A stretch of 64,000 nt of DNA, from positions 930,001-994,000 of the forward strand of contig OZ251225.1 of the NCBI GenBank assembly GCA_965240325.2, given 5' to 3'. The notes below the pieces were generated by a model. It had not been told where the DNA came from, searched no databases, and worked only from the letters and a program-made list of their open reading frames with translations. Within the stretch, counting starts at the first letter, position 1, and every line of letters starts with the position of its first letter. The position numbers and the translations under genes are program-made. The stretch comes from Rebecca billardiae RCC1528 (lineage: Eukaryota > Protista > Haptophyta). This document shows positions 9,681 through 14,212 of the stretch, piece by piece.

Positions 9681-11429
9681 GGGTCCGCCGAGGAAGAGGT
9701 GGTGACTCGGGCGTGCGAGGCGAGGGAGTTTTGGGCCTCTCAGAGCGACGAAGCGGGTCAACGCCTCAACGCAGCAATTAGTCATCTGAGGCAGGTCTTC
9801 GCCGAGTAGGTGGTGTTGACCGACGATTCGGGCGACGAAAACGGAGATCCTGATTGGCTGAACAGTAGAAGAATCTTTTTCGATACTGCATTTGCATAGG
9901 AATGTCGTCTACTGTAATCTGATTAGCCTCAACCGCGACCAAAAACGACGCATCATTTGACCGCCTCATCATCATCATCATCCCGTAGATTTGTTAAGTT
10001 CAACTGAGCAATATGCCAATCGTTATGGTCCACTCAGTTGGGGTAAGAGCAGTTGAGTTTCGTTCATCTACGGTTAAAGATACCTCTCCGGGATCCTTGA
10101 GTAATCCAACCGTAGAGGTCATGGTATCCAGGTGATGAATATTGAGTATGGACCATGGGGGTAGCCAGGTGGGAGACCAGCAAGCAGAGTATATTTAAAA
10201 AAATGATGTCGCTGGACGTCTCCGCCCCTTCCGTCCCGGTCGGCTCTCTTGCGGACGTGAGATATGTCTCTGGTTCCGTCGTCGATGACTGCTGCCAAGG
10301 TGTGTCTTGACCACTGCTGCCTTGTAGTCTGTGCGGATTTGACACGTCACGCCGTCGCGGTCTCACTGCCGCCCCGGTGTAGACGACTCAGGCATTGCCC
10401 GCTGCCGCAGCTGCCCCGTCGTTGTCCGCTTATCACTCAAATATCAGAGCACATATTCGGAGTCGAGCTACATAGAGCTAGCAGGGCTGGCCATCGCATT
10501 GTCAGGCAGCACCCACAGGCCCGACAGTCGGGCTATTGAAATTGGGTCATTACAGTGATTACTCATTGCGGCAGTGATCCTTCACGGTGCAGTCGCCTTT
10601 CAGTTTCACCCGATTTTAACATTTTTACCGTTTACGGGCGGTGCCTAGTGGCTAGTTACTGACTAGCTGAGCCTACGCGGACCGAGTAGTACTACTGAGT
10701 ACACAAAATCGTTATGACACCGTACGGCTGTATGTAGTGAGTTGAGCCTGGAGGCCGGGCGGCTTCGTGACTTCGTGTCGGAGCCGGACTCGGAGGCCGC
10801 GAGGCCGAGGGCGGTGCTCCGTCCATCCCGGCCCCGCTCCCGTAGGGGGGCAGGGCTGCGTGTGGCGCACTGTCTGACCTGGACGGAAGGCGCGGACGCA
10901 TTCTATGTGTCTGTTGCACTCTGAGCCTGACGCTTGTCCGAAGTGCTGCCACGTCGGTAATATATATATATATTAAATAGTTATATATATATATATAAAT
11001 TATAATTACAATATTAATGGGGCCGGCAATCGGCATGCCAATAGAAGTGTGAGAATGTCGATCGATCAGAAGTCTTTCAGTAGCAGTACTAAGCAGCCTG
11101 GGAGGAGGTCATCGGACCGTCCGAAGACTCCGACCGTCACCGATATCGGCGGGTCGGGCGAGGCTGACGAGGGCACTACGAGTACGAAGTGCGAGTGCGA
11201 GTCCGGTGCGAGAACCATCTGAGGGAGAACGCCAACTGCAGCTGCAGCCGCTGGCGGCGCACAGCTGGCGGCGCGGGGCACGCCGGTGAGCGTGCGCCCT
11301 GCACGGGGCAGAGTCAGGCGAAAGAGAGGACGAGCGGCCGGTCAGCGGCCGCCCACGCACCGCACGCGCGGCCCGCGATGCTCGGCTGCGCGCGCGAAGC
11401 CGGCGCGCACGGCCGCCCGCCTTCCGCCC

Positions 11430-14212
11430 TCATCCCCTGCCCCAGATGCGCGAGAGCAGGCCGCCGCGCCGCTCTTGCCGCTTGAGGGCGGACACGTCTG
11501 GCAGCCGCGCCGCCGTGTTGCGAGCCACGTCGAAGAGCAGCGGCTTGCACGCCACCGCCTCGAAGGGCGGGGGCAGCTGGATCAGATGGAACTCGGGGCC
11601 CGCCCCGCCAGCCTGCGCGGCGGGCGCGAGCGCGGTGCACGCCCAGAGGCCCAGGTCGTCCAGCACGTGGGGCGAGGGCTGGCCGCCGCCGCGCCCACTC
11701 GGCGCGTTGGCGAGTGTGAGCTGCTCGAGTCGCGAGGCGGGGAGCCCCTCGGGCTGCTGCGCCTGCACCCGCTGGAGCAGCGCGCTCGCCCTGAGCCGGC
11801 AGCGCGCGCCCGCCACCTCGGTGTGCAGCGTCTCGAGCGCCGCCCTCTCCGCCTCCATCTCCTCCGCTGGGAACTGCGGCAGGCGCGGCGGGGGCGGGCG
11901 CGGGCGCGGGCGCGGGGGCGGGCGGCGGCGGGCGCGGCGAGCGTGAGCGTCGTCGGGCGTCGCGCCGGCGGGGGCGGGCGGCAGCGCACGGCCGCGTCAC
12001 CGGCGCCGGCGCCGGCGCGCGCGTCGAGCGCGGCCGGCGCGCGCGGTGCGCGCGCGCGCGCACCAGCGGCGCCGGCGCCGTGACCTGCTCGAGCTGCTGC
12101 TCCGCCGTAGCCATGTGCTCGTCGGCGCGGTCGAGCAGTGCGCGCGCGTGCGCCCAGCGCGCCGCGCCCATGCACGAGAGCGCCAGGTAGAAGCAGCGGT
12201 GCGCCTTGGCCGAGGTCGCCGCCAGCTCGAGCGCGAGCAGGTCGGGGGCGTCCTCGTGTGCGTCCAGCAGAGCGCCCGTCTCGCCGAGGCACTCGAGCAC
12301 GACCGCGTAGACGCGCGCGATGTCCTCGGCGGTGACGAGCCGGCCGCCGGTGCCCGGCGCCGCGCCGCCGCTCGGCGCGGCGGCGTCGGCGCGCGCCGTC
12401 CCGCCCACGCGCTCGCGCATGTCGAGCAGCATCACGCCGTGCCTGCGCACGGTGTGCCGCAGCTTGCGCACAGAGAAGTACGTCTGCAGCGCGGAGAGCT
12501 GCGACGCGTCGGCGCGCGGCGCGGCGCCGCCGGGCTTGGCGCCGCCGCCGCGCGCCTCGGCCTTCGAGTCCGCGCGGATGATCTCGAGCGCGTCGTTGTC
12601 CTCGACGAGCAGCTGGTCGTACAGCTGCAGCAGCGGCTCGGACCGCGAGCGCGCGCGCTTGCCGCCGGCCGGCTGCGGCGCGGCCGCGTCGGCGCCGTCG
12701 GCCGCGGGCGCCGCGGCGCGCAGCGCGGCGTGCGCGTCTCGGATCTGGGTCATCAGCTCCTGCGCGCGCAGCGGGCGCGGCCGCGGGCACGCGCGCGTGA
12801 GCGCGCCGCGCGCGCGGTGCGCCGTGCCGCCGCGGCGCTCCCGTTGCCCCGGCGCCGCGCCGCGCGTCCCCGGCGCGCCGCGCGCGTGCGTCAGTGCCCA
12901 GTGCATGTGGACTCATGGCCCGCCGCGATTCAGACGGCGGGCTCAGTATTAACGAGATTCCTTTTGCAAATCGTCAGCCGCACGCGCGCGACGCGCGGCG
13001 CTGCTGCGCGCCGGCCTCCGCCGGGGCCCGGCGCCGTCGCGCGCCGCACGGCCGAGCGGCCGGCGGGCGGGCGGGCCGCGGCCGGCGCGCAGCGAGGCGC
13101 CCGCGTGCGCGCCCCGCCCCTCCCCACGGCGGGTGCCCCGGCGCCGCCCGCGCGCCGCGCCGCGCGCACCTGCGCGCGCAGGATCGAGACGCGCAGCTTC
13201 TCGTTCGTCACGGGGATCGGCTGCTGCCGGAAGACGATCTGGTCGAGGGACGCGGCCTGCTTCGCCTGCATGTCCGCCAGCATCGGCTCGAGCTTGGAGC
13301 GGAGGAGGTTGGAGGCGAGGTTGTGCGAGTCGTCCTTGAGCAGGTCCACGATGGACAGCTCGTCGTCCGCCTCCCCCGCGCCCTCCGCCTCCGCGCCCTT
13401 CCCGCCGCCCCCGGACATCTGCAGCTCGTACCGGGCGTAGCGCGCGATGGGCTGGATCTCGTCCGCCATCTCGCGGTACAGCTGCTGCTCGCCGAGCAGC
13501 GAGACGCGCGAGAGCTCGGAGTAGATGGTCTGCGCGCGGAAGAAGGAGCGGAGCGCCGAGGCCCAAGACTCGCGCTCGAGCGCGTGCGTGCCCACGATCC
13601 ACGCGGCGTACGCCTCCGCCTCGAGCAGCGTGCGCTTGTCCGCGCGCTCGGCGCACAGCGCGTGCAGCTCGGTCGCCCAGCGCGCGGCCTTGGCGAGGCG
13701 GTGGAGCATGTGGTGCCGCGGGCGCAGGTCGCCGCTCGACTGGCGCTTCAGGTGCATCGCCAGGCTCCACGCGCGCTCGGCGTTCATCAGCGGGATCATC
13801 AGGTGGCGCGCGTCCGTGCATGCGTCCGCGCGCAGCGTGCGCTTCGAGAAGCGCGACTTGCTGCCGTGCAGGAAGCCGACGGACTTGCGGATGCGGCGCA
13901 CGCGCTTGGTGCAGTACGCGCGGTAGCGCTCGTAGTCACCGTGCCGCAGGCCGTGCTCGTTCTGCGACGTCTTGATCAGCTCCAGGACTGCGCGCGCGCA
14001 GTGCCGCGCGCCGTGCCGGCGTGCGCGCGGATGAGTGCGCCTTGCGCGCGCGCGCGTGCAGCGCGCGCGTGCTGAGCCCGCGAGCGCGCGCGCGTGGGCG
14101 CGGGTAGGCGCGCACTGTGAAGCGTGAGCGGCTCGAGCGGCGCCGCGGGCGCGCCCGGCCCCGCGTCCGCCGCGTCGTCCATGCGCGCGTCGACGTCATC
14201 TGCGCCCTCCAT
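11430..14212 (-). CDS. SRP68: Signal recognition particle subunit SRP68, 4 exons: 14212-14116, 13987-13170, 12759-12064, 11873-11430
   Basis: [52 protein letters not shown], and C-terminal [17 protein letters not shown]. All GT-AG junctions are in frame. Confidence 0.93.
12886..12983 (-). ncRNA. Intronic box C/D snoRNA with two LSU rRNA guides, in SRP68 intron 2 (12760-13169)
   Basis: Sense strand: C-like UGACGA (12976-12971), guide GGAAUCUCGUUAAU (12961-12948), D' CUGA (12946-12943), 8-bp hairpin, guide GCACUGGGCA (12904-12895), D CUGA (12894-12891), 12-bp flanking stem (12879-12890/12979-12990). The guides are complementary to the conserved LSU rRNA segments AUUAACGAGAUUCC and UGCCCAGUGC. 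Confidence 0.88.

Follow-up and report, generated by a model that had tools for sequence, protein, structure and literature searches.

Intron 2 of the SRP68 gene of Rebecca billardiae very probably encodes a functional box C/D snoRNA with two guides against LSU rRNA. In the window, by which we mean the whole stretch of 64,000 nucleotides that was analysed, this element has the anatomy of the class and complementarity to the organism's own rRNA, and it is conserved with covariation in six distinct sequences. These are the window itself and the loci L126, L127, L128, L134 (identical to L135) and L137, in which the RNA recurs in the corresponding SRP68 intron, after the same exon end. The element looks like a real, conserved and previously unannotated dual-guide snoRNA, and like an ordinary member of a well-known class of RNAs. 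The release of the RNA, its assembly into a snoRNP and the two methylations that it would guide are predictions drawn from these observations.

The first-pass annotation had placed the element in a 410-nt second intron of SRP68, as an island of balanced composition in a CG-repeat background, and both statements agree with our results. The flanking exons match the SRP68 family of Pfam when searched singly, and the intron separates them in frame:

13170..13987, minus strand: SRP68 exon 2, upstream flank (Pfam PF16969, E 2.9e-61; 5' end approximate).
12760..13169, minus strand: SRP68 intron 2, GT..AG, 410 nt, about 90% GC outside the snoRNA.
12075..12759, minus strand: SRP68 exon 3, downstream flank (Pfam PF16969, E 1e-17; 3' end approximate).

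A third piece, further downstream, also matches PF16969. We number the 410-nt intron as the second because a shorter one lies upstream of it, between the exon with the start codon and the exon starting near 13987. The best named match of the protein is the SRP68 of Emiliania huxleyi (50% identity). Base composition drops sharply over the element, with a GC content of 0.62 at 12900-12999 and of 0.85-0.93 on both sides, and such a dip is present in every one of the six sequences. The snoRNA reads in the same direction as SRP68, on the minus strand of the window. In the literature that we searched, SRP68 is nowhere reported to host a snoRNA. In two relatives a STEEP1-like/PF1765-like gene follows SRP68 on the same strand (L127, 3422-4375; L143, 1803-2720).

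The element contains the features of its class: boxes C and D, a terminal stem, boxes D' and C', and guides of at least 10 nt. This includes all the boxes named at first pass (C, in the variant UGACGA, D' and D, on the sense strand), together with the 12-bp closing stem and the internal hairpin of 8 bp. Read 5' to 3' along the RNA, after the whole gene, the parts are as follows:

12879..12990, minus strand: the complete snoRNA gene, with its 12-bp closing stem; conserved in L126, L127, L128, L134/L135 and L137.
12979..12989, minus strand: 5' strand of the terminal stem, pairing with 12890-12880.
12978-12976, minus strand: 3-nt bulge G-C-U after the 5' stem strand, overlapping the first base of box C.
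12971..12976, minus strand: box C, variant UGACGA, read from the sequence.
Between box C and the D' guide, minus strand: spacer of 9 nt.
12947..12961, minus strand: D' guide, 15 nt long, pairing over 14 nt with the LSU segment AUUAACGAGAUUCC.
12943..12946, minus strand: box D', CUGA (CCGA in L134/L135).
12918..12942, minus strand: internal hairpin, with an 8-bp stem (12942-12935 with 12925-12918) and the 9-nt loop UCUGAAUCG.
12911..12916, minus strand: box C', degenerate AUGAGU.
12895..12904, minus strand: D guide, 10 nt, after a short spacer from C', pairing with the LSU segment UGCCCAGUGC.
12891..12894, minus strand: box D, CUGA, invariant in the six sequences.
12880..12890, minus strand: 3' strand of the terminal stem, beginning right after box D.

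The terminal stem has 11 bp as listed (12989-12979 with 12890-12880), 12 bp on extension, and 16 bp in the structure predicted by RNAfold, where it closes the molecule (-66 kcal/mol, z = -4.8 relative to shuffles). Boxes D' and D are 52 nt apart, and the mature form probably has a length of some 95-100 nt. A characteristic kink-turn spacing is part of the established structure of box C/D RNAs. Read from the sequence, the element has this spacing in both its C/D and its C'/D' motifs: a stem starts immediately after the GA of the D-type box, and exactly three unpaired nucleotides precede the GA of the C-type box. In the C'/D' motif these three nucleotides are a bulge between the internal hairpin and the GA of box C'. 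The box C of the window departs from the class consensus (UGACGA for RUGAUGA). The whole element is single-copy in the genome.

A word search of public assemblies with SRP68 exon 2 returned homologues 61-70% identical, and from these and the window we aligned the six distinct sequences. The search thereby answered the proposal made at first pass to look for the RNA in SRP68 introns of relatives: the guides are invariant and the stems change in a compensatory manner. All 15 nucleotides of the D' guide are the same in the six sequences, as are the nine 3' nucleotides of the D guide, which adjoin box D, and the UGAGU core of C'. The spacer next to the D guide varies, and so do the spacer between C and D', the stems and the flanking intron. 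Identity between sequences is 71-82% over the snoRNA and 28-66% over the 90-nt intron flanks. Box C reads UGAUGA in four of the six (L126, L127, L134 and L137) and UGACGA in the window and L128. At the position opposite the U of box D, the window (12973) and L128 (about 3347) thus have a C and the other four a U. The C-box variant of the window is, judging from this alignment, a tolerated change opposite the U of box D. The D' box and the hairpin loop also differ in a reciprocal way in two relatives: in L134/L135 (about 1375) D' is CCGA and the loop retains CUGA, and in L128 D' is canonical and the loop is without CUGA.

The stems were compared column by column. Over the two stems and six sequences, 94.9% of the stem cells form standard pairs, compared with 22-63% when the partners are slid by one to three columns. 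Five pairs show compensatory changes, and the observed covariation score was reached by none of 500 shuffles. In the terminal stem, which has 3-8 bp in the relatives, column pair 10/111 is GC in three sequences and UA in three, and 14/107 is GC in five and AU in one. In the internal hairpin (helix 2) 97.7% of the cells are paired and two pairs have compensatory changes. In L128 this place is taken by an unrelated hairpin whose spacing is the same, an argument that selection acts on the structure itself. Beyond these sequences, neither guide was found on either strand of the SRP68 loci L129-L133 (a 46%-identical homologue, and incomplete loci of Emiliania huxleyi and Phaeothamnion). A word search with exon 3, dominated by low-complexity words, returned a single protein, from the same sample as L134, on a contig that breaks off at the gene and lacks intron 2.

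Both LSU segments on which the first-pass annotation had rested its target assignments are present in the rRNA of the organism itself. At least four copies of the LSU rRNA lie on contig 20, and all of them contain UGCCCAGUGC and AUUAACGAGAUUCC. The D' guide forms 14 contiguous and perfect base pairs with this rRNA, and only its position 1 (A12947), which faces a G, is unpaired. The resulting duplex is the best in the LSU locus (-21.4 kcal/mol, compared with -15.9 for the next). The D guide forms 10 perfect base pairs, in a G+C-rich duplex. We searched both strands of the window for CTGA sites preceded, within 0-1 nt, by at least 10 nt of perfect antisense to LSU rRNA. Only two of 424 sites qualify, namely boxes D' and D of this snoRNA. 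The pattern made of the D' guide and its box occurs once in the 72-Mb genome, and the reversed control pattern does not occur.

A few other matches to the guides were considered and rejected. Three D-guide-like matches elsewhere in the genome (L140-L142) lack both box C and stem, and they occur as often as the control pattern. One of them (L141, contig 20, about 196012, plus strand) repeats the D guide over 10 nt, a single base away from a CTGA and on the same contig as the rDNA copies; it has neither box C nor terminal stem, and we took it as chance. Within the window, a 9-nt antisense-LSU match beside a CTGA at about 10004 (plus strand) was set aside as AT-rich intergenic sequence without boxes. 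The region around that match, 9880-10060, is an AT-rich intergenic patch with a CATCAT repeat. In a metagenome scan the two-guide pattern gave no match. The D' guide pattern alone gave at least 120, and those inspected all proved to be chance occurrences, with neither boxes nor an extended complementarity to rRNA.

By the +5 rule, the partner of D-guide position 5 (G12899) is the third C of GCCCAG (L002:3685), which we take to be yeast C2197. In the D' guide, position 5 (U12951) faces and pairs with the first A of UUAACG (L002:3808), the equivalent of yeast A2320. We computed a test of this register with 16 yeast modification sites (2197-2351): when the third C of GCCCAG is set to 25S C2197, 16 of the 16 sites fall on the correct base, and shifts of one or two bases bring this down to 7 of 16 at most. 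Arabidopsis numbering is yeast numbering plus one, and RiboMeth-seq in Arabidopsis lists C2198 (SnoR118), A2322 (U30) and A2327 (SnoR44) (PMC8053127). In human, C3680 is attributed to SNORD88 (bioRxiv 10.1101/037259). The spacing of the human sites, 3804 - 3680 = 124, is that from the third C to the second A in our sequence. The target predicted for the D guide, which the first-pass annotation had placed at the snR76/SNORD88 site, is therefore a conserved Cm position, namely C2197 of yeast, C2198 of Arabidopsis and C3680 of human.

The D' guide had been said to point one base away from the U30 site, and it does: its +5 position is one base 5' of that site, with the same offset in all six sequences. 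The cause of the offset is an extra A between the D' guide and the D' box. Since the six sequences have it in common, it is not an accident of a single sequence. To our knowledge, the first A of UUAACG is not methylated in yeast or human. Neither is it among the methylated sites of the Arabidopsis list (PMC8053127).

There is a modest chance that the RNA is a real dual-guide snoRNA whose D' guide directs methylation to the U30 site (the second A of UUAACG), or to both A's, through a non-canonical spacing. The second A is the one found methylated in Arabidopsis, and the same study validated the targeting of adjacent nucleotides by one guide, for SnoR58Y (C675/U676) and SnoR29 (G2410/U2411) (PMC8053127). 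Moreover, our genome search found no other guide for this rRNA segment, including one in the U30 register. Yet the +5 rule is normally strict, and an extra A before D' in six of six sequences suggests that the register was selected as it is. We thus retain the first A as the predicted target.

The D guide raises a different question, namely whether the 14-nt D' guide is the only active one, with a D complementarity too short to direct methylation and kept for another purpose, such as transient chaperoning of pre-rRNA. The D pairing is down to nine contiguous base pairs in L126, L134 and L137, and when the full 18-nt spacer was used in an energy scan, irregular duplexes other than the predicted D site scored equal to it. 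However, the nine nucleotides beside box D do not vary among the six sequences and the adjoining spacer does, the partner of position 5 is precisely the Cm site shared by yeast, plants and human, and the duplex is rich in G+C. We consider an inactive D guide improbable and keep the reading with two working guides.

The loop of the internal hairpin allows a further proposal. It is identical in five of the six sequences (window 12934-12926, L126, L127, L134 and L137) within a stem that varies, and it is absent from L128. Its first seven bases (UCUGAAU) are equal, in sense, to an rRNA 7-mer that directly follows the target of the D guide and that occurs once in the LSU locus. Complementarity of the loop to LSU rRNA amounted to chance-level duplexes with G-U pairs. 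One could imagine lineage-specific functions in which the shifted D' guide sets a new Am and the loop, as a mimic of the rRNA, occupies the folding partner of that segment while the snoRNA is bound, in the manner of a chaperone. We give this combination little credence. Finally, it is very hard to believe that the motifs came together by chance, or that they are a cis-acting structure regulating SRP68 splicing with no trans-acting RNA product, as the absence of an Rfam match above threshold might suggest, given the window-wide CTGA control and the uniqueness of the D' pattern in the genome, the six conserved copies with invariant guides, covarying stems and exact kink-turn geometry, and the fact that a splicing element would need no perfect antisense to two regions of rRNA methylation.

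The preferred reading, a functional intron-encoded snoRNA with two guides, would work as follows. The RNA would be transcribed within the SRP68 pre-mRNA and released from the spliced intron 2 by debranching and by exonucleolytic trimming up to the snoRNP. The snoRNP would assemble on the C/D kink-turn, which comprises the terminal stem and the 3-nt bulge, with tandem G-A pairs between boxes C and D. The internal hairpin brings D' and C' together and builds a second kink-turn from them. Fibrillarin would then methylate the 2'-OH of the rRNA nucleotide facing position 5 of the guide, counted upstream from D or D', and the predicted products are a Cm at the third C of GCCCAG for the D guide and an Am at the first A of UUAACG for the D' guide. 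Several points speak against this reading: the D guide is short (10 bp, and 9 bp in three relatives), box C is a variant, C' is degenerate, the canonical D' target is one base off the A that is methylated in Arabidopsis and human, the RNA matches no Rfam family at the gathering score, and the more distant SRP68 loci that we searched, two of them incomplete, do not show it.

We then compared the RNA with known families. At the gathering threshold, Rfam has no match in the whole window, and with E values up to 10 the intron returns nothing but spurious matches, to a miRNA and to a CRISPR repeat model. The relatives give sub-threshold matches only. The C'-to-D (3') half of two of them has a weak similarity to snR76 (19.3 and 21.3 bits, for a gathering threshold of 55). 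The best sub-threshold match of L134 is to snoR44/J54 (RF00357; 24.6 bits, E 1.1, gathering threshold 48), which targets an adjoining part of the same rRNA helix (Arabidopsis A2327 and C2338). The latter match rests mainly on boxes and stem, and the target nucleotides differ. We regard these snR76 and snoR44/J54 scores as reflecting boxes and guide content. U30/SNORD30 gives no match even at E values up to 10.

Under the +5 rule, the cytidine predicted to face position 5 of the D guide is the one targeted by snR76 of yeast, SNORD88 of human and SnoR118 of Arabidopsis; unlike these, the RNA described here carries a second guide and is hosted by another gene, and its D guide is short (9-10 nt). 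Its D' guide covers the rRNA segment of U30/SNORD30 (AUUAACGAGAUUCC), whose target is the LSU Am at Arabidopsis A2322 and human A3804, the second A of UUAACG. Here, the extra nucleotide between guide and D' makes the preceding A the canonical target, so the D' guide does not share the U30 target. We therefore describe the RNA as a box C/D snoRNA that is snR76/SNORD88/SnoR118-like by its D guide and U30-like by its D' guide, with membership of neither family demonstrated. The two sites are served by separate snoRNAs in Arabidopsis and human, and by one RNA here; this is what the first-pass annotation had proposed, and the Arabidopsis pair is SnoR118 and U30 (PMC8053127). In its general organisation the RNA resembles other intron-encoded dual-guide box C/D snoRNAs, which are likewise found one per intron, on the sense strand of a protein-coding host, as an AT-richer island in a GC-rich intron, with both D and D' guides in use. 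We found neither this pairing of guides nor an SRP68 host in the literature searched, which is an absence of matches and not proof of novelty. The reshuffling of guides among snoRNAs is common, and the combination of these two is therefore unsurprising.

The finding leaves the known working of box C/D snoRNAs unchanged. We found no snoRNA catalogue for haptophyte algae in our literature search, and this RNA is a contribution toward one, together with two concrete predictions for the map of rRNA methylation. The conserved one-base shift from the U30 site adds a small question about register. The way in which the RNA stands out, as an AT-richer island in an oversized intron of a genome with extremely GC-rich introns, seems usable in practice as a signal of snoRNA genes. 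Two guides that are separate in plants and animals are joined here in one molecule, which illustrates how guides are redistributed among snoRNAs in evolution.
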